Positions 11,930 to 64,000 of a stretch of 64,000 nucleotides of DNA are shown here, in pieces. The number at the start of each line of letters is the position of its first letter. The first letter of the stretch is position 1. The stretch lies in assembly GCF_001194135.2 (NCBI RefSeq), contig NC_068987.1, positions 24,043,913 through 24,107,912 of the forward strand. Direction: 5' to 3'. Source of the stretch: Octopus bimaculoides. Taxonomy: Eukaryota. The notes below the pieces were generated by a model. It had not been told where the DNA came from. It saw only the letters and a list, made by a program, of their open reading frames with translations, and did no database searches. A program made the translations under genes and the position numbers.

Positions 11930-12309
11930 TGACAATACGTTACAATTAATGACAAATACTTCAATGTCATTATTAGTAAATAGTTTCTTAAACTGAGCGT
12001 CACCAATGCTTATTTTTAAATAGAAATTAAGCCTGCATGTAAATAACATCTCAGAATTAATACATACTGAGGGTGGTTCAAAGATGTTTGCACTAAAACA
12101 TATTCAATAATTAGCTACTGATAATAGATTAACTTATTGTTTTCTTTGTGTCTTACCTCATTCTTTGATGCCACAGTATTGATAGGTGAAATAAATATAT
12201 AGGTATTAACAGACATAATACACTTCTTAGATATTCTTTTAGCTTAATTCACTTGTTTCACAGAAAACCGTGATCAATCTATCGAATAATAAGCCATACT
12301 TTCGTAAAA
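11930..12309 (-). promoter_or_regulatory. Conserved upstream non-coding module, copy 1 (ZNF1 unit)
   Basis: attaagcctgcatgtaaataac...ttattgttttc...GCCATACTTTCGTAAAA (12293-12309). Homologous blocks occur in the other minus-strand units. Confidence 0.65.
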
Positions 12310-12329
12310 ATAATTCTGCATAACTACAG

Positions 12330-13115
12330 ATTTCGGTTTTCGGATACAGAGATTCCGGAAAATTGCCAAAAATCAGAAGTTTGAAATTTCTATTGAACTA
12401 AAATTTTTTTGGTGAAATACGTAGAAAAATACGGAGATTATGATTCTGAAAAAAAAAAATTTTGTAAAATTTCAATTTTTCAAAAATAAATACCCCCACA
12501 TCATATCCCGGAATCATTGGAATTTGTTTTTTTGCATTGAATGAATTCCGGTGATCTACTATGCTACAAAACCCTTTTTTTTAGGCTCGGAAAACGGGGT
12601 GAGGTGGGGTGGAAGCCTCGGAAACTTCACCCCCACCCCCATTTTCAAATATTTTTTGCTATTTCTTTCTTTTCCCATAATTCTAGATAACATTTTGCAG
12701 AAATACGTTTTCGAGAGAGTGTGGATTACATTAGATTGAAAATTCAAAGAAGTTTGAAATGAATATATGAAAATGCAGAGGTTATAGAAGTTAGAGTGTG
12801 TACAGTTTTTGCATGTATGTGTGAAACGAAGTATAATATTAAGGCACTTTTTTGCCAATATTAAAACAAAAATATCTCCTGCCCATCTTGGCATAACTAC
12901 AGGGTTTTACCCCTAGTTATGCCAATATCTTTTTCTTACCTCTTAAAATCACTGGATATAATAATCCCAGATTGTAAAATAAATTTCCAATTTTTGGCGC
13001 CGAAATGAGTTTCATTTTTGTGTGGAGAGAGAGAGAGAATGAGTGCAATAAAGAGAGAGAGAGACAGAAAGAAAAAGAGAGTGAGTGGGTGATGAGGTTT
13101 ACCCAAACATTTGAC
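12330..13115. repeat. Interspersed repeat, probably a non-autonomous DNA element; same family as 31180-32720
   Basis: Long near-identical stretches are shared with 31320-32000 and 32220-32310, e.g. cattttcaaatattttttgctatttctttc...gagagagtgtggattacattagattgaaaattcaaagaagtttgaaatgaata and tttttggcgccgaaat. Confidence 0.75.
12878..12930. repeat. 53-bp hairpin insertion with 7-bp flanking duplication
   Basis: Perfect 12-bp arms TTGGCATAACTA (12888-12899) and TAGTTATGCCAA (12914-12925). AATATCT is duplicated at 12871-12877 and 12924-12930. The insert is absent from the family copies near 31940 and 32545. Confidence 0.75.
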
Positions 13116-14329
13116 AAGACAACACGTGCTCACGGAAATTACCGAGTAGTACGTTTATAGAATTCGAGTCAATACTAAATTACGCCCATGTTTATTATAG
13201 AGATCATGTAACGAATTATACTTTACACTGTTATATTTAACTGTGCGTGTATATTCCTTATCTTTGCTTCTGGTGTCTTCTGCCTTTCTATTAGAAACGT
13301 TTACCTGGGAATTTACTTAAAGTGAAAAAAAAAAAGATCGTATGCAACAGTTAAGTCGTCATAATAACATATTTCTGTATACCAGACCTTTAGCTGTTAT
13401 TTTTAGCACAACGAGTTTTCTGGTGAGGGCGTCATTTGCCTTCGTTGTCTGGACTTCTGTAGAAATCTACGGATGCACAAAACAGAAAAGGAAACAAATA
13501 TGGACGACTTGTTCCAAAACACTCCAACCCCCAATTGTTTTCCCCTAAAATCCTTATATCCTCGGAATCTAAATAGTCCGAGGTATATTTGTAGAGAATT
13601 TCTATAAAAAATTTCCATTTTCCTTAAAGTTAAAATGAATTGAAGTGGACTCCAGTGAATTTTCCGAAATTCTCCCCCTCCTAAAACACTCTCCCACAAA
13701 AAAAAAATTATATATTCGGAATCTACATGATATAATACATATTCGTAGAAAATTTCATTAAAAAATATCCATTTTTCTGAAAGTTATGATCACCCAAAGT
13801 CTGTGGGGTGGGGGCAGAAATTTAGTTCTGCCAAGAATTCTCTTTAAACACATAGGTTGCCTTTGGTCTCAGACAAATTTCAAGATCCTGCATATTTAAT
13901 TCTCAACTTAAGCATCTTTTAATTCTATTTCCTTTTTATTGCAAAATAAAATAAAGCTTTTTTACTCGTGGTCTTGCTAACCACGAATAGCACTATTTCA
14001 AACTTCTTGGGAATGATCGGCATGATGTAATTCAGAAGTTAATCAGTGACACCATCATGCATTTCTAGCTTGAACTGTGAAACTGCTTTAGTGGCTTGGT
14101 TACTCTTTAACAAACTGAAACCCAGGCTGAAAACAAGTAGCACAATTTTAAGCATCACATGTAAAGATTAACAACTCAAGAATTCAGGTTTACCAGGAAT
14201 AAGCAAAAGGATTGGACATCAGACTGCACTACAGAATTCATTGAGAGTTCTAATTGTGCTTGGACACCATTAACTATCAGCTACTCAAAAGACAAACAAT
14301 TCATTTTGTCTATGCTGTCGGCAATGAAT

Positions 14330-14825
14330 ACTGGTATACTGTTGCTCTGGACATGAAACAAATAGCTCCTGTTGAGGATTCATGAAAACTGCACCAACTT
14401 AAGTCAACTGTGAAGGGCTACATATCAACAAAAAAACAATTCTTGGTATTCAAGGTGTAGTTATTTTGAATTTTGATGAACATCACAGTCAAAGATGTGA
14501 CCATTTTATGACCCTACTCAACTATGATTTGTTCATAGATACCATTCTTTACATATTATCTGAGTGCCTAAAACATAAAGGTGTGCAAATCTAACCACAA
14601 ACTTCGGAACAAGGCCCCAGGTGTTGATGGTTTGTCTGGTAAGATCCTCACAAATTGTTTCAATGTCTTGGTTTCCTGGTTGCATTGTGTAATCACTTGC
14701 ATCTAGGAACAGGAGACTTAAAATCTCTCCCACAAGACTGGAGTGACACAGGCTTCCTCTCTTTCTTTAAGAAGGATGATACATATTCTTGCAACAACTA
14801 ATGAGGCATCACAGCCAAGATATTC
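14330..14825 (+). mobile_element. Degenerate RTE LINE, pre-RT region
   Basis: RNKAPGVDGLSGKILTN...LVSWLHCVITCI*EQE and PQDWSDTGFLSFFKKDDTYSCNN**GI match the KAPGxDG and PxDW...KKGD...NYRGI motifs. Confidence 0.75.
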
Positions 14826-15269
14826 ATTGTCCTTCTGCGACAAAATTTCTTCATGAGCATCAACACAGAGCACAAAATCAGTACAAAAATCTTTGCTGAC
14901 GCTCCATGTTTTGGATTTTGTGTCAAATTCTGATGTTTGTTGTCATTGATAGAGTGATTCTTTTCAAGAGCTCTTTCTCAAAAGATACCTCCCTTGGTTT
15001 TGGTGATGCATTCTGCTGTTCACAAAACAAAGTCATTTCTGATGTTACACCAGAGTCATTTTCAGAATGACCTAAATGGTAAGGTAGACAGCTGAAAAGA
15101 GAATTTATATGATCAAATTGGATCTTGAATCAATGTATAGCATCTGCCATTAGAATCATGACTGGCATCAAGCATATGTGATTGCATAGCATGGTCAGCT
15201 TCTGTGGATTCAGTTAAGTTTTATTTATATATATATATATAAGTTTGTGTCTCCTTGCCATTAACATAG

Positions 15270-15470
15270 CATATTTGTAAATGAGTGTCAGTCAGTGTCA
15301 TTCATTTTCCCTATTCAGCAAAAAACTTATATGGCCATGGAAAAATATTTGCTTAGAAACAAGTGAGGGTTGGTGACAGGAAGGGTATCTGGCCATCATA
15401 AGATCTGCCTCAACAAACTCATGCAAACATACACAAGTGCACATTAAAAATGATAATGATGATCTATAAT
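15270..15470 (+). mobile_element. RTE-like SINE tail, headless
   Basis: ttgtaaatgagtgtc...agaaacaagtgagggttggtgacaggaaggg...ttaaaaatgataatgatgat. Confidence 0.6.
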
Positions 15471-16176
15471 AGTTTAAATGCAGTAATCTGCAAGGGAACT
15501 CTTTTCAATTAAGACCTGACTTTTACAGTAAATCACCCTTCTTCCAGCTACACAAACTTACTATACTGGAAATAACTGATAAAAGATATACTTTGTAGAT
15601 TATTGCAACTTCAATTTAAAATCACAAAAGTAATTCCATAACGAAACACAGCTATCATCAGCTCATAACATTTTAATAGCGACAAATGTCTGTAAGCAGA
15701 TAAAATATTAAAATTTAATTATAAAATACATCAATTTTATTTGTTATTTAAATAAATGGTCCGTCCCATTTACACATGTAAATCTATATACACTTATTTA
15801 ATCATGCTGAAGAATGTTCTGGAAATTCTCCAGATTGTGTTGGAGAGAGTAAAAAAAGAAATTGTAGTTTGTAAACATTGCAAATCAGAAAGATTATTTT
15901 TTTATTAATCAGTGTATGAAAAATTTTATTGAAAATTTTCTTAACTATGTAAAATATTTGGGTGATATACAAAACAAATTGTTTTAGAAAGTTAACAGTT
16001 AATAAAAATTACAACACACTGATTTATAACCTTTTGCAAATGTTACAAAATATTCTCAAATAATTCAAGTAACATTATATAAACATGGCATTCATTAATT
16101 TTCTGTGATGTTCTTTAAACATTCACGGTATTAATTCCATTATGTCATAAAGTAATAATTTTACAAATTCTTTTAA

Positions 16177-17439
16177 TTATTTCCCTTGTTTTACAGTTTG
16201 GTTTTCATGTGCTTTTTGTTTGTGATTAGTCAAAATTTTATTCTTAGAGAAAGTCCTACCACAGATGTTGCAGCGATATGGTTGCACACCAGTGTGAACA
16301 GGTCTGTGGCGAGTTAAATGCTGATTATCAGAGAATGTTTTACCACAAATATCACAACTGTATGGTCTCTCACCTGTGTGACCACGTATATGAATCTTTA
16401 AATGTGTATTCTGAGAGAATGTTTTACCACAGATATCACAGTGGTATGGTTTCTCACCAGTGTGAACCCGTACATGTTGAGTTAAATGAACATTCTGAGA
16501 GAATGTTTTTCCACAGGTTTTACAGTGGTATGGTCTTTCACCTGTGTGGATGCGTATATGATTAGTTAACCTACTACTACGCGTGAATGTTTTCCCACAA
16601 ATATCACAGCGGTATGGTCTAATTCCTATGTGAGCTTGTTTGTGACTAGCCAAAGTATAATATGCAGAGAAGGCTTTCCCACAGATATCACAATGGTATG
16701 GTTTCTCACCAGTGTGAGTACGTCTGTGAACAGTCATGTTACCTCTTCCAGAGAATGTTTTCCCACAGACATCACAACAGTGTGGCTTTTCACTGGTGTG
16801 AATGTATTTGTGAACATTTAAATTAGAACTTCGGGCGAATGTTTTACTACATATACCACACTGATATGGTTTCTCACCTGTATGAATACGTATGTGACGA
16901 GTTAAGCTGTCAGTCTGAGAGAATGTTTTCCCACAGATATCACAGTGAAATGGTTTCTCACCTGAGTGAATATATTTGTGTCTACTCAAATGATTTAGCT
17001 GAGTGAAACTTCTCCCACAAATATCACAGTGATATGGTTTTTCACCAGTATGAATACGTCTATGATTAGTCAAAGTACTGCGGACAGAAAAGGTTTTGTC
17101 ACAGATATCACAGTGGTGTGGTTTCTTGCTTCTGTGAGTCAGTTTGTGTCTAGTCAAATATGAATTCTGAAGGAATACTTTACCACAAATTAAGCATTCA
17201 AAATCTTTCTGATCTGACTGAACACCCTTTGAGAATAAACGAGTTTTTGCAATTGCTTTGCTGTAAATTTTTTTAACCTTAAAGCTTGTAAGCAGTACAT
17301 TGGACTGTGTGAATGTTTTCTTATGAATGTCAAAGGGACATGATTGCTTTTCTACATCTACATATACCAGATTAGATATGTCATTGGATTCAGGCTGTGT
17401 TTGATCGTAAACCTGGTTTTCACAAAGCTTTTCTTCCAT
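16177..17439 (-). CDS. C2H2 zinc-finger protein ZNF2, ~78-aa leader plus 12 fingers, 420 aa
   Basis: Intact ORF starting [18 protein letters not shown] with 12 canonical fingers and TGE[KR]P linkers. Confidence 0.95.
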
Positions 17440-17863
17440 AATTTTCTTCTTTCTTCAATAATATACTTTTAAAAAAAAGTAGATTAATTTATAATGTTCA
17501 ATGAAGGTAAGCAAATTCTATGAAACTTCTTAAATACTAAAGTTAGAATGAATTTTCTTTTACAATAAAAGTTGAGATTTCACAAAGTCTGAAGATATCT
17601 CCTTCATAAGGAAATAATTACAAGATATTTTATTAGGACAGTTTCATTTCCTAGAGTTCAATATTGCAAACAAAAATCAGCAGGTAAGCAGACTCCAGTT
17701 CTCAAGATCCACACTGATATGAAAAGATATTACAGATAAACCAAACTGAATCTTCATGTTCTGTCTCTGTTACAATCTATTGTGTTCTTGATAATGATAA
17801 TCTTCTGTTTTCAAAATCAAATTTCTTGATATCAGCAATTACTATTTCAGTATCTACACAAAT

Positions 17864-17878
17864 CCTGAAGTGAAGAAT
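17864..17878 (-). promoter_or_regulatory. Putative splice acceptor of the ZNF2 terminal exon
   Basis: tattcttcacttcag with AG at 17866-17865, homologous to the other units. Confidence 0.6.
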
Positions 17879-18589
17879 ATAATGATATAATGTAGTACGG
17901 ACGTTATCTACAGAGGACAGACACATATAGTGGAAACAAATGAAAATTTTGAAAGGAAAAAAAATACAGGGATAATAGATTTAGACGAGCAGAATATTTT
18001 TTATTAGTGTTAAAATATAGAAAGTTTAGAGTAATAGTATGTATACACAGATTGATTTAAATGTCTTTATATCCACCTATCCATGCTAACAGAACCACCT
18101 CTGCTTACTACAAGAGAGCCTATGTGTGATTAATGAATGCGAGAAATAGTAGCCAAATATTCCTGGAATTACAACCTGTCTTGAAAATGAAATGTAGCTT
18201 GAGAAAAAGCTATGTCCAAAAGTAGGGTGGCGTGTTATAGAAACCTAGTTCAAACTCGCTCACTTTCATGTTGTTTCAATGTCTTGTTTAAATAAAGTAG
18301 AAACAAATTCTTTGTTAAAGGAATGTTCTGTTTTCAGAATGTCTCTAGATAGGATTTCTAATATGGCACTTTTCCTGTCGTATCATAGAATAGTTAATAC
18401 ATGTTAACACAAAAGCTATTAAAGGTAGTTATCTTTTTCGTTCGTACGACCTGGTTTGGTTTGAATTTTCAACATTAATGTAGTTTTACCTGCTAGTTAT
18501 GAAAATCACATTGGTTTTTTTTTTTTTTACATTATTTAAAAATGAAAATGTTACAACCCTTTAAAATTCGAAATTTTTGTTAGTTTTAG

Positions 18590-18847
18590 CCAATAGAGAT
18601 TAAACATAAATGTAAATAACATCTCACCATTAATACATATCACGGATTGTTACAACAAAGATATTTGCACGAGAAATACTAAAATACCCTGTTTAGCAAT
18701 TAGCTATTGACAATAGATCAACTTACTGTTTTCCTTCCGTATTTTCATATTATTTGATGCAATAATATTTAGAAATGAAGTGAAATCCAACATTTTGTTC
18801 CTTAATAAAGAGCTGATGAATGTATCATTAGCCGCTTTTTCGTAAAA
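18590..18847 (-). promoter_or_regulatory. Conserved upstream non-coding module, copy 2 (ZNF2 unit)
   Basis: gagattaaacataaatgtaaataacatctc...ttactgttttcc...GCCGCTTTTTCGTAAAA (18831-18847). Confidence 0.65.
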
Positions 18848-18882
18848 ATATTTTACAGGGCAATGAAATGGCAGAATTGTTC

Positions 18883-19694
18883 NNNNNNNNNNNNNNNNNN
18901 NNNNNNNNNNNNNNNNNNNNNNNNNNNNNNNNNNNNNNNNNNNNNNNNNNNNNNNNNNNNNNNNNNNNNNNNNNNNNNNNNNNNNNNNNNNNNNNNNNNN
19001 NNNNNNNNNNNNNNNNNNNNNNNNNNNNNNNNNNNNNNNNNNNNNNNNNNNNNNNNNNNNNNNNNNNNNNNNNNNNNNNNNNNNNNNNNNNNNNNNNNNN
19101 NNNNNNNNNNNNNNNNNNNNNNNNNNNNNNNNNNNNNNNNNNNNNNNNNNNNNNNNNNNNNNNNNNNNNNNNNNNNNNNNNNNNNNNNNNNNNNNNNNNN
19201 NNNNNNNNNNNNNNNNNNNNNNNNNNNNNNNNNNNNNNNNNNNNNNNNNNNNNNNNNNNNNNNNNNNNNNNNNNNNNNNNNNNNNNNNNNNNNNNNNNNN
19301 NNNNNNNNNNNNNNNNNNNNNNNNNNNNNNNNNNNNNNNNNNNNNNNNNNNNNNNNNNNNNNNNNNNNNNNNNNNNNNNNNNNNNNNNNNNNNNNNNNNN
19401 NNNNNNNNNNNNNNNNNNNNNNNNNNNNNNNNNNNNNNNNNNNNNNNNNNNNNNNNNNNNNNNNNNNNNNNNNNNNNNNNNNNNNNNNNNNNNNNNNNNN
19501 NNNNNNNNNNNNNNNNNNNNNNNNNNNNNNNNNNNNNNNNNNNNNNNNNNNNNNNNNNNNNNNNNNNNNNNNNNNNNNNNNNNNNNNNNNNNNNNNNNNN
19601 NNNNNNNNNNNNNNNNNNNNNNNNNNNNNNNNNNNNNNNNNNNNNNNNNNNNNNNNNNNNNNNNNNNNNNNNNNNNNNNNNNNNNNNNNNNNNN
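18883..19694. other. Assembly gap (N run)
   Basis: Run of N. Confidence 1.
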
Positions 19695-20140
19695 CTATTA
19701 CACTAAGTGACGAGAAATTACATAAGCCTAACTATCAACAGACTGTATTTTCGGGTATTTATTATCTTTTTTAGTTTCTTTCCCTAAACATTTGTAACTA
19801 ATTTTTTTCTTTATATTTTGCCGATTCCACAAGTTTCTTTCTTACACGCACGCACGCACACACACACAGATAAGCATACCAAAATTACTTGGGTTTAAAT
19901 CAGGATAATCTTCAAACTGTAGGTGCTTGTGTAAAGAACTTTCCATTATGTGCATTTTTTTGTTTCTTTTAATATATTTCTGAACTTCAAACAGCGAGTT
20001 AGAACATGCTTGGGGAAATCCGTAAACTTCTATTAATCGTATAATATATCCTGAATCTCGAGAATTAGTTATTTTTAATCAAATCCTTGTGACTTGAGAG
20101 TGTTAATACAACATAGGTACGCCATACAGCCACTTTACTG

Positions 20141-20462
20141 GCACTCTGCGGATTACGACGACGAGTGTTCCGGTTGATCCAATCAATGGAATAACCTGCT
20201 TGTGAAATGAATGTGCAAGTAGCTGAGTACTCCCCAGACACGCGTACCCTTAACGTAGTTCTCAGGGAGACTCAGCGTGACACAAAATGTAACAAGGCTG
20301 GCCGTTTGAAGCACAGGAACAACTCATTTTTTTTGCCAGCTGAGTGGACTGGAGCAACGTGAAATAAAGCGTCTTGCTCAAGGACACAACTTGTCGCCAT
20401 AAATCGAATTCGTAATCTTACGATCGTGAGCCGAATACACTAACCACTAAGCCATGCGCCTT
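20141..20462 (-). mobile_element. tRNA-derived SINE, near full length
   Basis: A-box TGGCTTAGTGG and B-box-like GAATTCGATTT, central gttgtgtccttgagcaagacgctttatttcacgttgctccagtccactcagctgg. The 3' half is shared with 22634-23008. Confidence 0.85.
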
Positions 20463-21007
20463 CACTACACATCCACTGGACACCTGGGAAAGACACATAG
20501 TGCTAGGCTTACACTCACCTGTGACATGAGTATGTTCATTAGTTTGTGTTTGAATCATACATGGCAGGGTTAGGACTCCTTGCCAAATTCAACATTTTTA
20601 GTTTTACCTTCTTAGAATTAGAGTACATAATCTATTATATGAACATTCCGAGACATTTCATAGCCAAACGGCACAAATTTGCTAATGGGACAGGACACCG
20701 GGACATATAGTATCTCTCTCTCCCGCTACGAAAGCAAATTTCTCATTTGTAAATTTGCAACAAATATGTTATGTTTCTAAATATTATCAATACTGTTGCA
20801 ATCTACTCCATTGAAGGCCTATCTTTACAAAATTTCATTAAAAAAATGTCTATTTTTCAGAAAGTTATTGCCTGACACCAAGCCTCGTATATGCCCTCAT
20901 TATGCACCACTATGTTAACTCCCTCTCTTTATACAATGTAAAGCATGATTAGAGAAATCAATCAACCAACAATTATTTGGCTGTTATATAGAGATTTTGT
21001 CTATTTT

Positions 21008-21023
21008 TTAATTTTTATTTCAG
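21008..21023 (+). promoter_or_regulatory. Putative splice acceptor of the ZNF3 terminal exon
   Basis: ttaatttttatttcag with AG at 21022-21023. The following sequence (attttctgttgacattgaga) resembles the exon starts of the minus-strand genes. Confidence 0.6.
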
Positions 21024-21279
21024 ATTTTCTGTTGACATTGAGAGAACATCAACCAATGTATGAAATTTTAAAGACTGCAGAATTACATTATCATCAAGAA
21101 AGCTTGTGACAGTTTATCTAACTATGATTAAATTTCATTAATAATTGTGGTGTTGATTGGAAATATATTGGTTAGATGGTGATGGTCATATTGGAGAAAA
21201 TTTGACATTACACCAGAACTATATTTTTGTTGTGTCTGATATCTGCTTCTTCTTTGAAATATTGGCAAAAGAGTAAATT

Positions 21280-22392
21280 ATGGATGGGAAACTGTGTAGG
21301 AGTGAGGTTCATGGTGAAAAACACCCTGATAATCTTTGTGTATCTAATCAAACAATGTACATTGAAAAGAAATCAAATCTCAGTAGTAACAACGGTAAAA
21401 TATTTGCACAAAGAACTAATACCTCAAAACATAAGATACTCAACACTAGCTCACTCCGTTACCAATGTGAAATTTGTGGTAAACGATTCCTAATAAAAAA
21501 CTTTTTGTCTTTACATAAATGTATTCACACTTCAGATAAACTCTATCACTGTGACACCTGTGATAAAACATTCTCTGAGAGAAGTCAGTTAATTTGTCAT
21601 ATATGTTTCCACATTGGTGATGGATTATACAACTGTAATATTTGTGGTAAAACATTCCTTGCGAGAGGCAAATTAAATCGTCACAAACGGATTCACACGG
21701 GTGAGAAACCATATTACTGTGATATCTGTGGCAAAACATTCTGTGGGAATAGTAATTTGACTAGTCATAAATGTGTTCATACAGGGAAGAAAGCGTACCA
21801 CTGTGATATTTGTGGTAAGTCATTCTCTCACAATAGTGCTTTGACTTGTCATAAACGTATTCACACAGGGGAGAAACCCTATCACTGTGATATCTGTGGT
21901 AAAACATTCTCACATACTAGTGGTGTAACATGTCATAAACGTATTCACACTGGTGAAAAACCATACCACTGTGATATTTGTAATAAAACATTCTCCCACA
22001 ACAGCGGCTTAACGTGTCACAAACGTATACACTCAGGTGAGAAACCATACCATTGTGATATCTGTGGGAAAAATTTCTTTCAAAGTGGTAAATTAACAAT
22101 CCATAAACGTCTTCACACAGGTGAGAAACCCTATCACTGTGAAACCTGTGGTAAAACATTCTCACGACATGATAGCTTAAACATTCACCAACGTTTCCAT
22201 ACAGGTGAAAAACCATATCACTGTGATATCTGTGGGAAAGCATTCTCTCAGAATACTCATTTGACTAGTCACAAACGTATTCATACTGGTGAAAAGCCAT
22301 ACTGCTGTGATATTTGTGGTAAAACATTCTCTCATAGTGGAATTTTATCAAATCATAAACACATTCACACTAGACATAAAGCATGGCACTAA
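21280..22392 (+). CDS. C2H2 zinc-finger protein ZNF3, leader plus 11 fingers, 370 aa, inverted relative to the cluster
   Basis: Intact ORF starting MDGKLCRSEV with 11 fingers. A decayed 12th finger follows the TAA. Confidence 0.94.
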   Translation: MDGKLCRSEVHGEKHPDNLCVSNQTMYIEKKSNLSSNNGKIFAQRTNTSKHKILNTSSLRYQCEICGKRFLIKNFLSLHKCIHTSDKLYHCDTCDKTFSERSQLICHICFHIGDGLYNCNICGKTFLARGKLNRHKRIHTGEKPYYCDICGKTFCGNSNLTSHKCVHTGKKAYHCDICGKSFSHNSALTCHKRIHTGEKPYHCDICGKTFSHTSGVTCHKRIHTGEKPYHCDICNKTFSHNSGLTCHKRIHSGEKPYHCDICGKNFFQSGKLTIHKRLHTGEKPYHCETCGKTFSRHDSLNIHQRFHTGEKPYHCDICGKAFSQNTHLTSHKRIHTGEKPYCCDICGKTFSHSGILSNHKHIHTRHKAWH

Positions 22393-22633
22393 AATATAAC
22401 CTATGGTAAACATTGCCTCAGAATAGTAATTTAGCAAAGACCTGAACGGAAGATGAATCATAAAAGTTTGAACCAAAGAGAGAGCCTCTATGCAACAAAA
22501 TTTCTTTTAAATCATACACTATTGTCTTTAGAAAAGATACATTGAATGCTGTAATCTGAAATGAACTATGTCTATAAGCAATAAACTTGTTTCACTTATT
22601 CAAACAATGTCCTTAAATATTATATTTGTCAGG

Positions 22634-23008
22634 AGTGGAGGCGCAATGGCCCAGTGGTTAGGGCAGCGGACATAGGATCGCGGTTTCGATTCCCAGACCG
22701 GGCATTGTGAGTGTTTATTGAGCAAAAACACCTAAAACTCCACGAGGCTCCGGCAGGGGATGGTGGCAAACCCTGCTGTACTCTTTCTCTCACTCTTACT
22801 TCCTGTTTCCGTTGTGCCTGTAATTCAAAGGGTCAGCTTTGTCACACTGTGTCACGCTGAATATCCCTGAGAACTACGTTAAAGGTACACGTGTCTGTGG
22901 AGTGCTCAGCCACTTGCACGTTAATTTCACGAGCAGGCTGTTCTGTTGATCGGATCAACTGGAACCCTCGACAACGTAAGCGACGGAGTGCCAACAACAA
23001 CAACAACA
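22634..23008 (+). mobile_element. Full-length tRNA-derived SINE with (CAA)n tail and 10-bp target-site duplication
   Basis: A-box TGGCCCAGTGG, B-box GGTTTCGATTCC, tail (CAA)n. ATTTGTCAGG is repeated at 22624-22633 and 23009-23018. Confidence 0.92.
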
Positions 23009-42344: not shown

Positions 42345-42620
42345 GATGTCAGTTGTCCATGCTGACATGGGTTGGACAGTTTGACCAGGACTGGTAAGTT
42401 GGAAGGCTAGACTCCAGTCTGATTTGGCATGGTTTTCTACGGCTGGATGCCCTCCTAACGCCAACCACTCCAAGAGTGTAATGGGTGCTTTTACATGCCA
42501 CTGGCACGGGTGCCATTTGCATGACATTTGCGGTATCTGCCGCGACTGCAATTTGGTCGGCTTGATGGGTCTTCTTCTCAAGCACAACATAATGCCAAAG
42601 GTCTCAGTCATTGGCTCTGT
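42345..42620 (-). mobile_element. RTE-related 3' repeat
   Basis: tccatgctgacatgggttggacag...ggctggatgccctcctaacgccaaccactccaagagtg belongs to the 28762 family. Confidence 0.7.
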
Positions 42621-44739: not shown

Positions 44740-45143
44740 TATATGTGTATATATAATGATGACAAATGTCTGTGTAACCAGAGTAGATAAAGTGAATCAT
44801 TTAAAAATATAACTACCATATATTTTTAATCATTAATAATTGTATAGAAAGGTTTATACATATAAATAAAGTTTTATTCTAAAACATTCATTTTCTTCAT
44901 ATTTACAATAATTTTCAACCTGATAAATGGGTAAAATGATAAGTGTAAATTTACATTCAGTTCTATTACCATGTTTTAGAACATTCTGGAAAAAATCTTT
45001 TAAAAAAAATGTGTAGTTTATGTTAATGAAAATATCATTTTTGTCCATTTTCATTGTATTATCTGTATCACAAAAATTCCCTTGTGACTTCATGACATAA
45101 TAATTTGTGATAAGTCTGCAAAATAATTCTATTCTTTTATTGT

Positions 45144-46355: not shown

Positions 46356-46516
46356 AGTATCTCTTTTGGGGAATGTTTTTCCACAGACATCACAGGAGTA
46401 TAATCTATAATCTTTTTATAAACTTGGTTTCAATTTCACAGGAACTTAACCAATGTTATAAAAACAGTTAATCAAATGATTAAAAAACAGTTCTTCTGCG
46501 TCTTCTGTCTTTAAAA

Positions 46517-46591
46517 TCAGACAAATTTCTTGATATCTCTTGAATCAGCAATTCCCATCTCAATGTTAACACAGACTCTGAAGTAAAGAAC
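46517..46591 (-). promoter_or_regulatory. Putative splice acceptor and 13-codon uORF of ZNF6
   Basis: ttctttacttcag with AG at 46579-46578; uORF MGIADSRDIKKFV* at 46558-46517. Confidence 0.62.
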
Positions 46592-47134
46592 AATGAAAAA
46601 TAAAGAACAAGAAAATAATGTACAAAAAAAACAATGAAAAGTTAACGTAGAGGTTATTAAACTGAAGAGATTATCAAGAGAGGTTGATAGGCAGAATAAT
46701 AAAAATAAGAAAATATCTACAGAGGGAAGATGCAGTACTCTAGCTTTGTAATGTAAATGGATGATATAATGTGTGGATGAAGACTTTAGAAACAAGATGG
46801 TAGGCTGATTGAACTAACAAATGGCAAAGGCATACATATATAAAGTAGTGGGTTGAAAAAGTTTGGTTAACCAATATTGTTCCTGAAGTTACACAAAATT
46901 CTCTCAAAAGGTTACTTAAAAGATCTAAAATCAGGCAAGAGAGATAATACCTACAAGATCAGCAAATCAAAATTTTTAGGAAATACAATGCATTAAAAAT
47001 GTGAGTGGAGTTGGTCTTTGAAACCAACTGGTGAAAGTAACAAATGTTTGTCTTATTAATCCTCCTCAGTGAAGCATACTCAACTCAGCTGGCAACAAGA
47101 CTTAGTGTGTGTGTGTGCATATAGCCATAGATAT

Positions 47135-47805
47135 AACTGTGAGGTTAAGTTCACTTCACAACCATGTAGTTTCAGGTTCAGTCCCACTATACTTAGTGCA
47201 AGCATCATCTATTATAGCCCTGGGCTGATCAAAGCCTTTTCAGTGAATTTGGTAGAGGGAAAAACTGAAAAAAAGTCAGCTTTATATTTGTGCATGCATG
47301 CCTCTGTGTACATGTGTGTGCATCTATATGCAAGTGGGTGAGCATGCATGTGTGTGTGTGTCTCCTTGACATTGCATGCTAATTGTAAACAAATGTCACA
47401 ATCACACAAGCAGTTTTGTCTGTTTTCAATTTTCCTTGAAAACACGTCTGGACTTCTGTCACCTCTCTGCCATCTGAGTCATATTACCTCAAAAATTGGT
47501 ACCCATCTCAGAATACTGTGTACTTTTATCACTCATCCCTCTCATCACTATTGTTCATACCTCTCACTTTGTAAAAAGGCAAATGAGCAAGCAGAGATGT
47601 GGAGCTGTGAGATCCCTCTAGTCATGAAAAAGCACCCAGAATACGCTGTGAAGTGGTTAACGTTAAGAAGGGTAAGAAGTGTAAAAACCATGGCAAAGCA
47701 GACATTGCAGCCTGATACAATCTTCAGACCTGTTGGATCCTATCAAATCGTCCAACCTACGCCGGTGTGGAACGTGAACGTTAAATGATGATTATGTTGA
47801 TGATG
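47135..47805 (+). mobile_element. Degenerate composite SINE pieces (tRNA-like head and RTE-like tail)
   Basis: Head at 47135-47290, microsatellite, then tail remnants ending ggaacgtgaacgttaaatgatg near 47790. Confidence 0.5.
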
Positions 47806-48699
47806 CATACATGGTCAGTGTGATGTGATATTTGATTTTCACCTTGAAATAACTTTATAAGGTTACTGAATAATACATATGTTGCAATACTTCATCGTTA
47901 TCATTTTCACATTTTACTAGTAACAAGTTTGACAATGACTGAGGACGGCATTTCTAAACTGACTATCAGCGCCTGCTTCGATTTAGTTGGGAAAATACAC
48001 TCAAAAAAACTAGGGAACCTCAAAAGTACAGTGCACCTCCATTAATTAAACTAGATAAATTCAAGTTCTACCATAGAAAGTACTAAACAAGACAGTAATG
48101 CCTGAACATTGCGTTTTTGATTTAGTGGAGTGGTAGTTAATTAAAAATGTTGGATAGAGAAAGTAAACGACAGCAAACACCATCATAATAGAGAGAGATG
48201 CCGGGAAAACGTATAATGTAAGTTCTGTTGTTTATGACAATAACAAAATATACTTAGTTAGGTGCTAAAAACAGATGAAGGAAACGTGGGTCAAGCGAGT
48301 CTTTTATTTACTATCTCATATTCGAGGAGTTTATGACAGAACCAGTTTAAAACAGGCATATTCAGTAATACACAAGAGGCGATTGCCAAAATGCACAAAT
48401 TAAAAATACAATGACTTTTATGCAAAAAATAAAGGAGAGCAAATATGTTTTCAATCACTTTTCACAGACATTTTTACTAATAAGGTTAATATTTTTGATG
48501 TATAAAACACTTCTGCGCTTCAAGGTAGGTTGTTGTTTCATTAAAATGAATAAACACAAAATACAAGACAAACCTATATAATTATAAACAAACTGAATGT
48601 TCAAAATATATCGAGACTGACAGCGAGCTAATTCGATTGAAACGAAACTAAAATCTAAGAGAGCAAAACAAAGAGAATTTGTTATTATTGCAACAATCT

Positions 48700-49084
48700 A
48701 TCACAGATAGTTAACAAATACTGGAATGTCACCATGCATAATGTTAGCTAAATAGTTTCTAAAACTGAATATTGCTAATGTTTACATTTAAACAGATTAA
48801 ACCTGAACGTAAATCGCATCACACGATCAAAACATCATATTGTGGATTGTTACAAGAGACGTTTTCATTAGAAATAATTAGCTACTGAAAACACACCAAC
48901 TTACTGTTTTTTAATCTTTTTCTCATTATTTGGTGTTATAATATTGAGAGATAATTTGATCTATGGATCTATAGACACAATATACTTACTATCTGTCCAA
49001 TAAACCATCTTTACAGATTCACAGAACCCAAGTGATATACTTCCATGCAGACTTAATCAAATCTTCAGCCGTACTTTCGTAAAA
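48700..49084 (-). promoter_or_regulatory. Conserved upstream non-coding module, copy 5 (ZNF6 unit)
   Basis: cagattaaacctgaacgtaaatc...caacttactgttttt...aaatcttcaGCCGTACTTTCGTAAAA (49068-49084). Confidence 0.65.
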
Positions 49085-49202
49085 ACGGATCTCTCTCTCT
49101 TCTTCCTTTCTCTTAACCAGTACACCAATATTAAAATGTGTAGCTGAAATTTATTTCTCCAAGTGTCTATTGTGGTGTATGCGTGCGAGTAAAAGTAATT
49201 GG

Positions 49203-49325
49203 CTTACCTCGTTTTCCTTCTTTTGCACGAGTCTGTTCTGCGGTATCCGATCCTCGCGACCCGAAGAACACTAGAAATAGCAGCTGCTTCTCCCAACACC
49301 TAGACGATCGCTTGGCACGTTCTCA
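49203..49325 (-). promoter_or_regulatory. Candidate non-coding first exon and splice donor (GAG/GTAAG) of ZNF6
   Basis: CpG-rich ~120-bp segment ending in a consensus donor (GT at 49207-49206), ~120 bp upstream of the conserved motif. Confidence 0.45.
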
Positions 49326-49681
49326 ATCATCAAACAGATAGAGTACTTATGCTGTAATTGGGTGATCCTACTTATATCGAAGTTTTGCCCTGTAATTGTA
49401 TATTTCATGATTTCAGAGTTGCACTTTTCTTTCTATTTTAAGAGGGGTCAAAATTTTCGTCACATTACTGCGACCTGTCACTCACAAAGTTCCACTGCAG
49501 ATGTTTAAAAGCCCTTTTTTTCTCTCTCCCTTTCCCTTGTTATACTTACACAGATATAAATCTGTTGTACAGATGTTTGATCTTTTGGAACTAGTCACTT
49601 CTGGGTTCTAGTCTATACTGGCTTATCTATTGCAAATATCAGTTATGCACTATGGTGAAAACGTTATTAATCAAGGAATAG

Positions 49682-50045
49682 AGGTGCAGGTGTGGCTGTG
49701 TAGTTGAAACTTTTCTTCTCAAATACATGGTTTTGAATTTATCCTCATTGCATCACACTTTCGATAAGTGTCTTCTATTATAGCCCTGGGCCAACCAAAA
49801 TTTTGTGAGTGAATTTAGTAGATGCAAACTGAAAGAAGCCAGATTATCTATCTATCTATTTGTCTGTATTTTTTGTTGCTTTGTCTTGACATCACATGAT
49901 AGTTGTAAATGAGTGTCACTGTTATACAAGTAGTGTCATTCATTTCCAACATTCTGTGAAAACATGTTTGGTCATGGGAAAATATTACTTTACTTGGAAA
50001 CAGGTAAAGGTTGGTGAGAAGAAGGGCATCAGGCTATACAAAAGC
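49682..50045 (+). mobile_element. Composite SINE: tRNA-like head plus RTE-like tail, truncated at a mariner fragment
   Basis: ggtgcaggtgtggctgtgtagttg...aactgaaagaagcc...ggaaacaggtaaaggttggtgagaagaagggcatc. Confidence 0.7.
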
Positions 50046-50047
50046 TG

Positions 50048-50579: not shown

Positions 50580-51002
50580 TTGTGTGGTTAAGACATCTGC
50601 ATCCCAACCACATGGTTTCAGGTTCAGTCCAAGTGAGTGGCACCTTTGGCAATTGTCTTCTACTATAGCCCCAAGCTCACCAAAGCCTTGTATAAGTGGG
50701 TTTGGTAGAAAGAAACTGAAAAGAAACTTGTATGTATATATGTGAGTGTGTCTCCTAGCCTTGACATTGCATATTAATTGTAAATGACCATCACCATCAT
50801 ACAAGCAGTGTCCCTCACTTACAATCTTCCATGAAAATATGTCTGGTCAAAAGGAAATCTTATCTTACTTGGAAACCAGTGAGGACTAGCAACAGAAAGA
50901 ACATCTAGCCATACAAAATCTGCCTTAACAAATTCCATCTGACTTATGCAGGCATGGAAAAATGAATGTTAAAACAGTGATGATGATGATGATGATGATG
51001 AA
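50580..51002 (+). mobile_element. Composite SINE: tRNA-like head, (TG)n, RTE-like tail with (GAT)n end
   Basis: Same organisation as 8629-9050, ending gttaaaacagtgatgatgatgatgatgatgatg. Confidence 0.72.
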
Positions 51003-53215
51003 TCCTGAAAATGATTCAGAAATCAGCATTTTGTTATCAATGAATCTGGTATTTGCCATTTATTCTAATGCCTCCATTTTTTAAGAGCTTTCACATCATT
51101 GTATCTTGTAAACATGCTGTAAATATCCGAAGTTAGACGTCACTGGCATTAACAGCCATATCCAGTGGAAGAATCTCACTTGTCCACATTCTTATGCTAT
51201 GAACTGTTGTATTTTATGACTGATTGTAGTTTCCCAATTTTTGAATTGAGTTGCAAAAATCAAAATGACGATGCACATATTCATTCTTAATACACTCCAG
51301 TAGATTCTAACATGAACATACTAATTGCTATTGTATTTTGTCTACTGAGAACAACTTCTTTCAGACAATGTGTGTTCACTAGTTATTTCATCGTTTCATT
51401 CCTCAATAATACTTTTGTGTATTTCGAAGAAGAAGGGTGATTTGTTGTAAACAGTTTACTTTATTTGAAACAAGATATTTTTCAGATTATTGCATTCAAA
51501 AACTATGAAAAGAGAAGCAGAGTTATGATTTGGAAAAAAAAGAGATGATAGATATCTCTCAATCAATGGAAATAGAATTATCTATTTGGACCAGGGGTAA
51601 TGTAGTCTAGGTTGCAATCCAAAGGATCAATAAACACCTGAAACGATTTTAAGCATTAAAGGTGTTGAATTATGAGCAAATTGAATCTAGAAAAGCATGA
51701 TAATTTAAGGTTAAAGCTCACTAATTTCCAGCCAAATATCAATACAATAACTACTAGTATTCATCAAACATATTTCACAGTATACATCCCGTCTATGTCA
51801 ATATAATATGACTGGATTTTTATTTTTCAATTTTGTTGAGTATTTTCATTAAATATTTATTAAAAATGGGTAATAGCACAAAAGGAAGGAAGGAATTATT
51901 GTTTTTAAATCAAATTTTTATTAATTATACTTACAAATTCACATGAAAGGAGTCAATAAGTTATCAACTATTCAATGGAGGGATCAATGAAATAAGTTTG
52001 CTGACCCCTAATTTAGATAGAGGATTATAACATAATAGAATACACGACAGTATTAAAATATAACATGCTACAATTCAGTGACTAGTTGTATAATGACAGT
52101 AGGTGTGATATCTACAAAGCAGGTCAACAGGTGACAGACTGGTGAACACAAATATAAGCACTCCAGTGGTACACTGAAATTAATGGAGTAGGACAATTTT
52201 AAAAGGTAGCTATATGACCAAACTGGAGCCAAAAGGTCAAAGATAGACAATTATGGGTTAGGGCTGAGAGGTGTTTGTTAAGTTAGATCAATAAGTACCT
52301 TAATAATGATCACACTGACATGCCATGTCGATTTGGACATACTTTTCTCCCCAATGACAATGTAGTTCACATGGACATACCCTTTAACACTTATAACATT
52401 TAAACACTTCAACTTCATCAATCATATTCTGATAGCAACAGTAATGTAACATGCATTCTTCTGTGTCACACTTTTACTTTCTATCCTTAAAAGGGTCACT
52501 TAGCTTTTCAAACTTCATCCTCCTATTCACCTATTGTATACTGCTTTGCTCCAAGTCCTGCTCTAACTGTACTATTAGTCACTTACTTCTAACATGTTAC
52601 AATTTGACAATATCCAGTGCTCTGTGATGCTATAAGTCAAAATTGTATTTCTCAAATCCCATTGAGAGATATTTGTCAGCACGTTTAGATTTTCTTTCTC
52701 CATTTGTATCTCTTCTTTTTATATTATTTAACATTCTGCATGCAATAATCAGCAAGACAGAATGTTTCAATTAAAGTTAACAGTTTACAGCAAATCATCC
52801 TACTTCTAAATACACAAACTTATTCTTGCAGAAACAAATGATGAAATAGTTTTTGTAGATTATTAAAACTTTAATTAAAAGACAGAGAAATACATCAGTC
52901 ACAAAATAGAACAATTCATAGCATTAAAATGATGACAAATGTCTGTGTAAGCAAACTAGATACTAAAGTTAATCCAAAATGAATCATTGAAAAATGTAAT
53001 AACCATGTAGTGGAGAGATTCTTTTATTATAACACTATGCACTGCTTCTTATTTACAATTACCTTCCATGCTTCAGTTCTATCATCATGTAGAATGTGTG
53101 AGAAAAAAGAAAATCTCCAGTTTATATTTGTCCATTTTCCAAAAAATTCCTTTGTATTATCTGTCCCATAGAAATTCCCTTTTGTCTTCATGAGGTAACA
53201 GTTCATAAAACTTCT

Positions 53216-53944
53216 TCAGATTAATTCTTTTATTGCTTGCTGTCCATGTGCCTTTTTTTTATGATTAGTCAAACTCCTACTCTCAGAGTAAGTTTTACCA
53301 CAAATATCACAATGATATGGTTTTACACCTGTGTGAACAGGTTTGTGACGATTTAAATTCTGATTGTCAGCATATGATTTACCACAAATATCACAAGTGT
53401 ATGGTCTTTCACCTGTGTGACCACGTACATGGAGTGTTAAATGACCTTTCTGAGAGAAGGATTTACCACAGGTATCACAGTGAAATGGATTTTCACCTGT
53501 GTGAATACGTACATGTTGAATTAAATGACCATTCTGAGTGAATGTTTTATCACATATATCACAGTGATATGGTTTCTCACCAGTGTGTATGCGTACATGT
53601 TGAGTTAGATGAGTATTCACCGAGAAGGTTTTACCACAGATTTCACAGTGGTATGGATTGTCACCTGTGTGCATGCGTATGTGTCTAGATAAATTACTCT
53701 TGCCAGAGAATCTTTTTCCACAAATATCACAGTGGTATGGTTTCTCACCAGTGTGCATGCGGATGTGCTGAGTTAATCTATTACTGACACAGAATCTTTT
53801 ACCACAGATATCACAGTGGTATGGGTTATCACCAGTGTGTATGCGTATGTGTCTAGTTAATGCACTACTGCCAGAGAATGTTTTCCCACAGATATCACAA
53901 GAGTATGGATTCTCACTACCCTGAGCACCTCTGTGATTAGTCAT
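53216..53944 (-). CDS. C2H2 zinc-finger protein ZNF7, leaderless, 8 fingers, 242 aa
   Basis: The ORF starts at the helix Met of a decayed finger (CYFNTCRKTFF*RGN-MTNHRGAQ). Confidence 0.9.
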   Translation of the reverse strand: MTNHRGAQGSENPYSCDICGKTFSGSSALTRHIRIHTGDNPYHCDICGKRFCVSNRLTQHIRMHTGEKPYHCDICGKRFSGKSNLSRHIRMHTGDNPYHCEICGKTFSVNTHLTQHVRIHTGEKPYHCDICDKTFTQNGHLIQHVRIHTGENPFHCDTCGKSFSQKGHLTLHVRGHTGERPYTCDICGKSYADNQNLNRHKPVHTGVKPYHCDICGKTYSESRSLTNHKKKAHGQQAIKELI

Positions 53945-54540
53945 GTTACCTCTTCAAAAGAATGTTTTCCTACAAGTATTAAAATAGCATGGCTTTTCAC
54001 TTGTGTAAATAGGATTGTGTCTATTTAATGGATATTCTAAAATATGCTTACCACAAATACCATTTTCATAGCCAAACATTAATTTATCAAATGCAGCAAA
54101 TATTTTTCCACAGATATTGCATTGATATGGTTTCTCACATAAATGAATATATTTGTGTGTAGTCAAATGACTTTGCTGAGAGGACACTCTTCCACAAATA
54201 TCAAAACAGTATAACTTTTCACCAGTATAGATACATTTATGCTTGGTCAAATTACTGATGTAGGATAAAGTTTTACAAGAGATTATGCCCTGATAAAATT
54301 TCTTATCTTTCTGGACATCATTATGCAAGAACAAAATTTGTTTTTGATAATTACTTAACTATTCATTTTAAAACATTTAAGCTTTTTAACTTGTATGAAA
54401 AACCAAAAAAACTTTCTTTAATAAAGGATTAAACTATATAAATGTTTTTTTACTGGTATACAAAAGACAAAATTTGTATCTGTGTAGCAACTAGATTCTG
54501 ATTTAGCTCGATCATGTTACATATCTCTATCACAATGTGC
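53945..54540 (-). pseudogene. Decayed 5' part of ZNF7 (old leader and fingers 1-5)
   Basis: ORF 54334-53954 (TTG start) aligns with [14 protein letters not shown]...[12 protein letters not shown] of ZNF4/5 but has lost many Cys residues. It is in frame with ZNF7, separated by one TGA at 53956-53954. Confidence 0.85.
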
Positions 54541-54633
54541 TTATAATCTTAATTCAAACATTAATGCAACTTCCTCAAGATGTTATAGATGTGTTACTTG
54601 TAATCTATTCTTCATAATACCAGTTTTCTTTCT

Positions 54634-54714
54634 TCAAAATCTGGTAAAGTTCCTTAAATATACTGAATTCCACAATACCATCTCATTGTCACCACAAAAC
54701 CTGAAATAAAAAAT
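54634..54714 (-). promoter_or_regulatory. Putative splice acceptor and 15-codon uORF of ZNF7
   Basis: ttttttatttcag with AG at 54702-54701; uORF MVLWNSVYLRNFTRF* at 54681-54634. Confidence 0.62.
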
Positions 54715-55002
54715 ATAAGGTAAAAAGGACAATGTAAATGACAGTTATTAGAGAAATAGGGCTTGACTAGATTGAATGAGAGAATAAAAGGGGAAGAGCA
54801 GAAAAACAATATTAAGGATATCCATACATAACATCAGTTATGATGTGATGTATGGACAAGAACTTTTGAAAGGAAATAATGAGACACACAGATGTAGAAA
54901 GAAATCAAGAATTCTTTTTGTGGGAGTATACACATATAAATAACAAACAGTGTTGTCATCCACATAGAAGGTTGAAAAAAAAAGCAATGAAAATTTAACA
55001 CA

Positions 55003-55235
55003 GTGCCCCTAGACTGGCTCCTGTGCAGGTGGCACGTAAAATACACCATTTTGAGCGTGGCCTTTGCCAGTACCGCCTGACTGGCCTTCGTGCCGGTGGT
55101 ACGTAAAAGCACCCAGCTGTAGAAACTCTGCCAAATCAGATTGGAGCCTGGTGTAGCCATCTGGTTCACCAGTCCTCAGTCAAATCGTCCAACCCATGCT
55201 AGCATGGAAAGCGGACGTTAAACGATGATGATGAT
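55003..55235 (+). mobile_element. RTE-related 3' repeat with (GAT)n tail, young copy with an internal deletion
   Basis: Near-identical to the reverse complement of 28762-29002 but missing ~39 bp between cacc and cagctgtagaaa. Confidence 0.8.
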
Positions 55236-55505
55236 TTGAAGAGAGTGGGGACTAGACCAGAACAATAACAATGTTACAATAAAAAATACAGAAAATACTG
55301 TGAAGGTGAGACACAATAGTGTGTAAATGGATGATGCATAGATGAGGTAATAATGAAGTATACAGACGTAGAAAAACTGATAAAATTTTTATTTATTTAT
55401 TTTGTGTGAGTGGACTATAATATAAATAGGTAACTCGGGGACACCATCAATTTACTAAAGAAAACATACCCATCAAAACTAGGCAACAACAATACAGCGA
55501 TGTAC

Positions 55506-56088
55506 NNNNNNNNNNNNNNNNNNNNNNNNNNNNNNNNNNNNNNNNNNNNNNNNNNNNNNNNNNNNNNNNNNNNNNNNNNNNNNNNNNNNNNNNNNNNNNN
55601 NNNNNNNNNNNNNNNNNNNNNNNNNNNNNNNNNNNNNNNNNNNNNNNNNNNNNNNNNNNNNNNNNNNNNNNNNNNNNNNNNNNNNNNNNNNNNNNNNNNN
55701 NNNNNNNNNNNNNNNNNNNNNNNNNNNNNNNNNNNNNNNNNNNNNNNNNNNNNNNNNNNNNNNNNNNNNNNNNNNNNNNNNNNNNNNNNNNNNNNNNNNN
55801 NNNNNNNNNNNNNNNNNNNNNNNNNNNNNNNNNNNNNNNNNNNNNNNNNNNNNNNNNNNNNNNNNNNNNNNNNNNNNNNNNNNNNNNNNNNNNNNNNNNN
55901 NNNNNNNNNNNNNNNNNNNNNNNNNNNNNNNNNNNNNNNNNNNNNNNNNNNNNNNNNNNNNNNNNNNNNNNNNNNNNNNNNNNNNNNNNNNNNNNNNNNN
56001 NNNNNNNNNNNNNNNNNNNNNNNNNNNNNNNNNNNNNNNNNNNNNNNNNNNNNNNNNNNNNNNNNNNNNNNNNNNNNNNNNNNNNNNN
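55506..56088. other. Assembly gap (N run)
   Basis: Run of N. Confidence 1.
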
Positions 56089-56519
56089 TCACTGAGATGC
56101 AACACAATTTTGTCAGTGAACAGGTCGCGGTCTCAGAGCGAGGAAAATATTTTGACAAATTAAATTTAAATGTTGAAGTGAATCTGACGGCTTTTGTGTG
56201 TTATTTTAAATGGCTTATAAACACCTTCCACGCTGCAATTGTTTACAATAAGTTTCTGTTCAAAAATTTTTTACCATTGTTTATTAATATTTTAAGTTGA
56301 ATACAATGTTTCTATTGTTGTTTAAAGTTCTTCTATATCGTTAAATTGAAACTAAAATATCCACATTGAACACAAGATAAACGTAAATATTTAAACATAT
56401 ACAGATAGATGCCTCGTCAAAACACAAAACACTTTGGATGAACAAAACATACCGGGATCCAGAACAAACTGATATGGTTGAAAAGAGATTCAATGACAAC
56501 AGAGAAAAAACAGGATTTG

Positions 56520-57124
56520 TTATTAATTATGACAATCTGTCACAAATGATACTTGAAAGTTGCCATGCTTAATGTTTGGCACATAGTTTCTGAAACTGAA
56601 TGCTGTTAGTATTTAAATTCAATCGAGATTAAGCCTGAATGTAAATAACACCTGACTACCAATAGATCATAATATGGATTATTACAACAGAGAAGTTTCT
56701 TGTACTAGAAATATTAAAATAATTAACAACTGACAAAGCATCAACTTAATGTTTTCTCTGTATTTGGTGAGATAATCAGATATATGGAGATATGTAGAGA
56801 TATAATATACTCACTATATGTCTAGTCAAGCAATTCCACTGATTTCACAGAACCTTAGCAATAAACTTTAATGCAAACCTAGTTCATCAAATCTTCAGCC
56901 GTATTTTCGTAAAAAAAAAGACTTATTTTCTTTTTTCTCATTATGTTGTGCCGTAACACCGAGTGATGGTCTGATCTGTGAGTGTATGCTTATATATATA
57001 TATATTTAGAGAGATAGAGATACTCAGTTTATGTGCAGTCAACCAACTTTATTTTCACAGAATCTACGCGGCATACTTTAATGCCAACTTAATTCATCAA
57101 ATCATCAGCCGCGCTTTCGTAAAA
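56520..57124 (-). promoter_or_regulatory. Conserved upstream non-coding module, copy 6 (ZNF7 unit), with its last ~130 bp duplicated
   Basis: gagattaagcctgaatgtaaataacacc... with the motif at 56898-56914 and again at 57108-57124. Confidence 0.65.
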
Positions 57125-63991: not shown

Positions 63992-64000
63992 ATAAGGTAT

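Follow-up and report, generated by a model that had tools for sequence, protein, structure and literature searches.

The pattern of non-coding sequence conservation in a tandem array of zinc-finger genes suggests that each gene was duplicated together with its own probable promoter region. The array consists of eight C2H2 zinc-finger (ZNF) genes on Octopus bimaculoides chromosome CM046607.1 (GCA_001194135.2), and the window analyzed here is a stretch of 64,000 nucleotides (nt) from this chromosome, in which a position equals the record coordinate minus 24043912. Upstream of the genes lies a conserved block, the module, that opens with a 10-bp motif identical in all seven copies that carry it. 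A proximal promoter, a non-coding exon 1, and approximately 350 nt at the beginning of intron 1 probably all lie within this block. An earlier note on this DNA had proposed a promoter-proximal or first-intron control element. The location at the 5' end of the transcription unit agrees with that proposal, but the pattern of splice donors and a conserved downstream acceptor do not fit one discrete control element. Where transcription starts, whether the splice sites are used, which factor binds the motif, and whether the genes are co-regulated are inferences from the DNA sequence.

The module is found in nearly every unit of the array and always has the same orientation. A profile hidden Markov model (HMM) built from six copies was searched with nhmmer against both strands of the window and 13 kb of flanking DNA. 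It recovers six full blocks of 490 to 550 bp in the window and one partial tandem copy, with no others on either strand. The recurrence in a single orientation upstream of ZNF1, 2, 4, 5, 6, and 7 had been recognized before, but the length had been put at only 300 to 400 bp. All of these copies are on the minus strand: ZNF1 at 11780-12317 (E=1.3e-98; motif 12309-12300), ZNF2 at 18337-18854 (E=9.4e-95; motif 18847-18838), ZNF4 at 30435-30924 (E=1.6e-96; motif 30915-30906), ZNF5 at 40618-41154 (E=1.6e-122; motif 41146-41137), ZNF6 at 48556-49093 (E=1e-116; motif 49084-49075), and ZNF7 at 56366-56917 (E=4.7e-117; motif 56914-56905). The ZNF7 unit also has a partial tandem duplicate of about 200 bp (56927-57130, HMM positions 5-170, E=1.2e-20; motif 57124-57115), which covers just the part from the motif to the decayed donor region; self-BLAST pairs 56780-56915 with 56992-57125. 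The eighth copy, found by nhmmer 2.7 kb upstream of ZNF8 and in gene orientation, lies beyond the window end at L002:6771-7267, equivalent to window positions 65968-66464. A full copy is present in seven of the eight units, always in gene orientation and 5' of the gene. The block is separated from the ZNF open reading frame (ORF) by 0.9 to 4.3 kb in the six in-window units, and the order of module, a second conserved block (block B), and finger exon is constant. Because the ZNF genes are on the minus strand, the motif is the gene-distal start of the block and not its end, as had been stated.

The motif is the longest invariant run of the module. TTTCGTAAAA occurs exactly seven times in the window, always on the plus strand (at 12300, 18838, 30906, 41137, 49075, 56905, and 57115), and reads TTTTACGAAA in gene orientation. 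The chance expectation is 0.21, and none of 100 shuffles gave seven occurrences. These sites are the ends of seven 17-mers whose last 10 nt had been reported as identical, and the report is correct, CpG included. The 8-bp core TCGTAAAA is confined to the same seven places in the window. Invariance was computed over the six full motif-bearing copies: of the 266 columns occupied in all of them, 27% are invariant. Only the 10-mer forms an invariant run longer than four, and a run of at least ten was obtained in 4 of 20000 permutations. The window has a G+C content of about 33%, a CpG observed/expected ratio of 0.36, and an excess of TpG and CpA, and this CpG depletion is typical of germline-methylated DNA. 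The ratio is 0.46 to 0.96 within the modules. The CpG of the motif is retained in seven of seven copies, and the next CpG, eight bases on, is TG or CA in three of the seven aligned copies. The motif is most likely a binding site for a transcription factor at the putative proximal promoter. Two other interpretations of the motif block, a GNRA hairpin (UAC-GAAA-GUA) and small upstream ORFs, were rejected because the bases after position 10 differ between copies. A metagenome scan with the motif block gave chance matches only, none of them reaching into the module.

Comparison with neighboring DNA shows that the block is kept by selection while the surrounding spacer has decayed. A seven-way alignment that starts 35 nt upstream of the motif and extends 1 kb past it was scored by gap-penalized mean pairwise identity. 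The identity is 46-68% in the core and 51-54% in the motif block, and it is 22-36% in the 55-115-nt stretch that separates the two. Beyond the block, past about 700 alignment columns, it is 11-38%. The same alignment procedure applied to unrelated segments of the window sets the baseline at 22±11% (99th percentile, 44%), so the flanking spacer is indeed unalignable, as the earlier note had judged by eye. The note had also considered that the block might be no more conserved than neighboring DNA, and the core clearly exceeds this baseline. Ungapped identity is 65% in the core and 49% in the internal spacer. Upstream of the motif there is no conserved sequence.

The relationships among the modules point to duplication of the block together with the gene rather than insertion. 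Distances between modules correlate with distances between finger exons (Mantel r=0.46, p=0.026), and a group of ZNF6, ZNF7, and ZNF8 is common to the two comparisons. The module distances track the exon distances, and therefore the block was copied with the genes, as had been supposed. The single copy per unit, always in gene orientation and in a constant order with block B and the finger exon, points the same way. Homology also runs on past the gene-proximal end of the block in a subgroup-specific manner. The proposal that the block is specific to this cluster is weakly supported: a search of 172 kb from other octopus ZNF loci (96 kb from O. bimaculoides plus sequence from O. sinensis and O. 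vulgaris) yields no copy, and this sample rules out only an abundant dispersed element and leaves room for low-copy families. One of these loci (L012, O. bimaculoides CM046628.1:5806671-5831467) is another ZNF cluster, unrelated in sequence to the module. More than 1.7 kb of its intergenic DNA can be aligned between units at 78-82% identity (4539-5740, 14860-16566, and 20927-22649). Since this array is young, with 78-82% identity throughout, its upstream DNA is uninformative about constraint.

A splice donor appears to be a regular feature of the module. On the gene strand, the conserved stretch …GAAAGAAAACA|GTAAGTTGAT… forms a consensus 5' splice site in ZNF2, ZNF5, ZNF6, and ZNF8, and the ancestral donor is ACA|GTAAGT. 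This form is found in ZNF2 (G at 18726), and the donor scan identifies the ancestral type in ZNF5 (ACA|GTAAGT, G at 40996) and two donors in ZNF6 (ATA|GTAAGT and ACA|GTAAGT, G at 48989 and 48904), all on the minus strand. In the three remaining in-window modules the ancestral site is lost and a substitute lies nearby on the same strand. In ZNF1 the ancestral GT has changed to AT, and GAG|GTAAGA (G at 12156) is present 22 nt upstream. In ZNF4 a 33-bp deletion took the ancestral donor, and AAT|GTAAGG (G at 30775) lies just downstream. In ZNF7 the ancestral GT has become TT (TTAAGT), and the upstream substitute ATA|GTGAGT (G at 56814) is common with ZNF6. As a result of these substitutes in ZNF1, ZNF4, and ZNF7, in every unit a GTRAG donor follows the motif by 95 to 195 nt; such donors have a background frequency of 1.83 per kb on the same strand.

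A matching acceptor is found in block B, the second conserved non-coding block, which lies 250 to 750 nt upstream of every finger exon and contains an acceptor and a short exon-like stretch. Block B is located on the minus strand at 8054-8274, 17700-17900, 28142-28354, 36845-37011, 46405-46616, 54529-54742, and 63803-63999, and for ZNF3, which is inverted, nhmmer places it on the plus strand at 21004-21141. Alignment, nhmmer, and pattern search agree that its polypyrimidine-AG acceptor, YTTTATTTCAG|R, is strongly conserved in eight of the eight genes, including ZNF3 (21013-21035, plus strand). In ZNF1 it is at 8212-8234, and in the other minus-strand units it is at 17853-17875, 28292-28314, 36949-36971, 46566-46588, 54689-54711, and 63966-63988. 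The module is the only conserved sequence upstream of this acceptor. A role for block B as a start-codon exon (…GAAATG|GTAAT) was rejected because the ATG is missing in ZNF2 and ZNF5. Weak matches to block B also precede the ZNF ORFs of the L012 cluster (7771-7858, 17050-17126, and 23481-23555).

The donor pattern and the conserved downstream acceptor suggest that the block extends from the promoter through a non-coding first exon into the start of intron 1. On the gene strand each copy begins with a 30-bp conserved block opening with the invariant TTTTACGAAA, followed by a poorly conserved stretch of 55 to 115 nt, then about 45 conserved nt up to the 5' splice site, and finally about 350 nt of conserved sequence past the donor. 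Transcription would start at the motif or shortly downstream, with the motif at or just upstream of the start. Exon 1 would be non-coding and at most about 100 to 190 nt long. It would be joined to the block B acceptor 0.9 to 4 kb downstream and then to the finger exon with the start codon. The conserved 5' part of intron 1 probably carries further promoter-proximal control sequence.

Several observations weigh against a promoter and first exon in this position. The ZNF8 block has no recognizable motif, an exception to the earlier description of a module with an invariant motif in each gene unit. ZNF1 keeps the motif despite a broken N-terminal coding region. A search for transcriptome contigs encoding five of the window's proteins matched only the genome record. 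The most conserved part of the block follows the proposed donor, an unusual arrangement for a simple intron; the start of the intron must therefore carry a function of its own. Finally, fourfold-degenerate sites in the finger exons are about 70% identical, compared to 65% for the module core, and therefore the strength of constraint has to be judged against flanking DNA. Because the finger exons undergo gene conversion, a better neutral yardstick is provided by the flanks and the internal spacer.

The strongest alternative, though an unlikely one, is that the block is purely intronic. It would then be a first-intron enhancer, silencer, or boundary element, the promoters and first exons would lie further upstream, and the GTRAG sites within the block would be cryptic. 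The ZNF6 unit speaks for this idea. An exon-like, CpG-rich segment on the minus strand at 49202-49330 has 8 CpG in 100 bp and ends in a donor, GAG|GTAAGC (G at 49207), that precedes the motif by 123 nt, in agreement with the earlier report of a donor and a CpG-rich segment about 120 bp away. With this segment upstream, the ZNF6 block could be intronic, a further point against placing the transcription start within the block. There is also no exon signal in the best-conserved 350 nt of the block. The ZNF6 segment has no homologue in the other units or loci, however, and nothing is conserved upstream of the motif. In addition, the turnover of donors within a 100-nt interval in three units is hard to explain if the site is unused. 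The ZNF6 segment is a possible alternative first exon.

It is improbable that the block is a transposable-element relic, either inherited passively from the ancestral unit or inserted repeatedly. One form of this explanation is a plus-strand retroposon with a conserved 3' tail, ...CAGCCGTACTTTCGTAAAA(A)n. The sharp edge of conservation at the motif, followed by A-rich sequence on the plus strand, would be consistent with such a tail, and the short extra copy in the ZNF7 unit keeps only the motif end. Octopus genomes are repeat-rich, and the octopus DNA searched amounts to only about 270 kb. Against a transposon are the presence of one copy per unit, its fixed orientation and order relative to block B and the exon, and the lack of other copies in 77 kb of the locus or in the 172 kb from other ZNF loci. 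Module distances also follow exon distances, and subgroup-specific homology extends past the gene-proximal end. The block contains no consistent terminal inverted repeats, no ORF, and no match in an Rfam search or a tRNA scan. Passive carriage leaves unexplained why the block outlasted its flanks and why the 10-mer is invariant. A functional RNA (an intron-hosted microRNA or small nucleolar RNA, or an antisense long non-coding RNA exon) or a small peptide is very improbable: the block is conserved non-coding sequence within a transcription unit and octopus has many lineage-specific microRNAs, but RNAalifold run over the full length gives no consensus pairs, the best local window on either strand reaches only -3.3 kcal/mol, Rfam gives no match, and a six-frame check finds no coding exon, as expected from the earlier description of the block as non-coding, with no frame open across copies and indels that are not multiples of three.

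The motif resembles a known homeodomain binding site. The optimal site of HOXB13 is TCGTAAAA and that of CDX is GTCGTAAAA; the HOXB13 site loses over 70% of its binding with any single mutation and gains affinity when the CpG is methylated (PMC5896879). The core of the octopus motif is identical to this published optimal posterior-Hox/Cdx site, as a match of sequence only, and it contains the CpG whose methylation modulates binding. It differs in having a 5' T and two further invariant bases. The base before TCGTAAAA is T in all copies, instead of the C preferred by HOXB13 or the G preferred by CDX, and this weighs against the assignment. It is doubtful, although conceivable from the match, that TCGTAAAA acts as a methylation-sensitive switch of the posterior Hox/Cdx class located where each gene of the cluster begins. 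Such a switch might turn the array on regionally or one promoter at a time, and it would be an invertebrate ZNF counterpart of the protocadherin promoter-choice element. If the site were bound in a methylation-dependent manner by a homeodomain factor, it would tie body-axis or neural patterning factors to a lineage-specific ZNF array. Otherwise the locus still shows clearly which sequence is kept by selection after an old tandem duplication.

Tandem arrays with related 5' regions are known from vertebrates. In the clustered protocadherins, each variable exon is preceded by a conserved sequence element (CSE) that is short, highly conserved, and CpG-containing. The CSE binds CTCF and has a proposed role in methylation-sensitive promoter choice. 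Each protocadherin unit is an alternative first exon that is joined by splicing to constant exons common to all units. The octopus cluster is similar in having one short, CpG-containing conserved motif per unit of a tandem array, with a promoter role that is predicted in octopus. In contrast, each octopus unit is a complete gene, shared constant exons are absent, and the motif is unrelated in sequence. Mammalian KRAB-ZNF clusters, for example at human 8q24.3, are also tandem C2H2 ZNF genes, and their paralogs share proximal-promoter features (PMC2865497). Their related 5' regions have common binding-site modules, and the gene architecture is similar, with non-coding exons at the 5' end and the fingers in one large exon, exon 1 being a prediction in octopus. 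The human KRAB-ZNF promoters, on the other hand, are CpG-island and TATA-less promoters with shared SP1, EGR1, and ETS sites and no alignable 500-bp block (PMC2865497). The octopus paralogs have alignable sequence and one invariant AT-rich 10-mer, and the genes of the cluster lack the KRAB domain.

The locus is a tidy but fairly ordinary outcome of tandem gene duplication. It adds an invertebrate ZNF array to the cases of shared 5' regions; its motif is different, and the alignable block is unusually well preserved. Expansions of C2H2 ZNF genes in cephalopods have been linked to nervous-system evolution, and to our knowledge there is no description of their cis-regulation. Co-regulation of the genes had been suggested as a possibility in the earlier note; the ZNF8 unit has lost the motif, tandem paralogs in these expansions are often in different co-expression modules, and promoters and motifs go unmentioned in the most recent survey of them that was found (PMC12513265). 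The locus provides a concrete promoter model for one cluster, with a predicted start region and specific junctions between exon 1 and exon 2. The model singles out a 10-bp site in which the CpG has survived despite the heavy CpG depletion of the surrounding DNA.

The window contains eight long ORFs with 8 to 14 in-frame C2H2 fingers apiece, according to the ORF list and finger counts. Seven are on the minus strand: ZNF1 (6276-7514), ZNF2 (16177-17439), ZNF4 (26657-27808), ZNF5 (35416-36519), ZNF6 (45144-46355), ZNF7 (53216-53944), and ZNF8 (62344-63234). Only ZNF3 (21280-22392) is encoded on the plus strand. In every unit the finger exon is complete and includes a stop codon. A protein search with one whole ZNF returned thousands of unrelated ZNFs, and one with the N-terminal non-finger region gave no match. 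The C-terminal tail matched just short octopus ZNFs at 60% identity, with no orthologues among them.

Three assembly gaps are present, and none of them interrupts a block or motif. The first (18883-19694) begins 36 nt beyond the ZNF2 motif. ZNF2 and ZNF3 are arranged head to head (16177-22392) with these 812 Ns in between, and ZNF3 is an inverted unit with block B. No module for ZNF3 is detectable in the readable 1.3 kb, and the gap hides the expected place. The second gap (31447-31602) is 531 nt beyond the ZNF4 motif, within a repeat that recurs at 12493-12794. It is flanked by 60-mers that are about 85% similar, so the sequence there is uncertain. The third gap (55506-56088) separates the ZNF7 block from the conserved acceptor. 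The order, orientation, and spacing are as in the other units, and continuity is unproven.

Individual units show further changes. The N-terminal non-finger region of ZNF1 (7515-7800, minus strand) is broken: it reads MEEKLCERKVHYQMQSESSVVSHV, followed by a stop and a frame change, and the 412-amino-acid ORF restarts at an internal methionine. ZNF1 may be a pseudogene or a truncated gene that has nonetheless retained the motif. ZNF4 and ZNF5 are 89.7% identical over 1.3 kb (26718-28057 and 35429-36767), and the value rises to as much as 97-99% near the start codon and in the roughly 250 nt before it. In the modules and block B of the two units it is only 63-73% (about 64% for the modules). The contrast suggests a recent gene conversion or partial re-duplication in which the promoter module was not included.

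Other repeated sequences are found downstream of the genes and in the spacers. Block C is conserved just past the stop codons (5777-6031, 15474-15709, 34731-34878, 44752-44822, 52717-52984, and 61758-62008) and is probably 3' untranslated region. A complex repeat is restricted to the ZNF1 and ZNF4 units, where it lies 190 to 420 nt upstream of the motif (12493-13067 and 31325-32709, in both orientations). Two dispersed repeat families are found in either orientation in the spacers. The first is at 8607-9051, 15220-15417, 47200-47323, 49678-50047, 50589-50986, and 1742-1901 (minus strand). The second is at 28763-29001, 32860-33091, 42348-42506, 43517-43708 (minus strand), and 55043-55235 (minus strand). 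Both families are probably transposon fragments, which would explain part of the unalignable spacer DNA.

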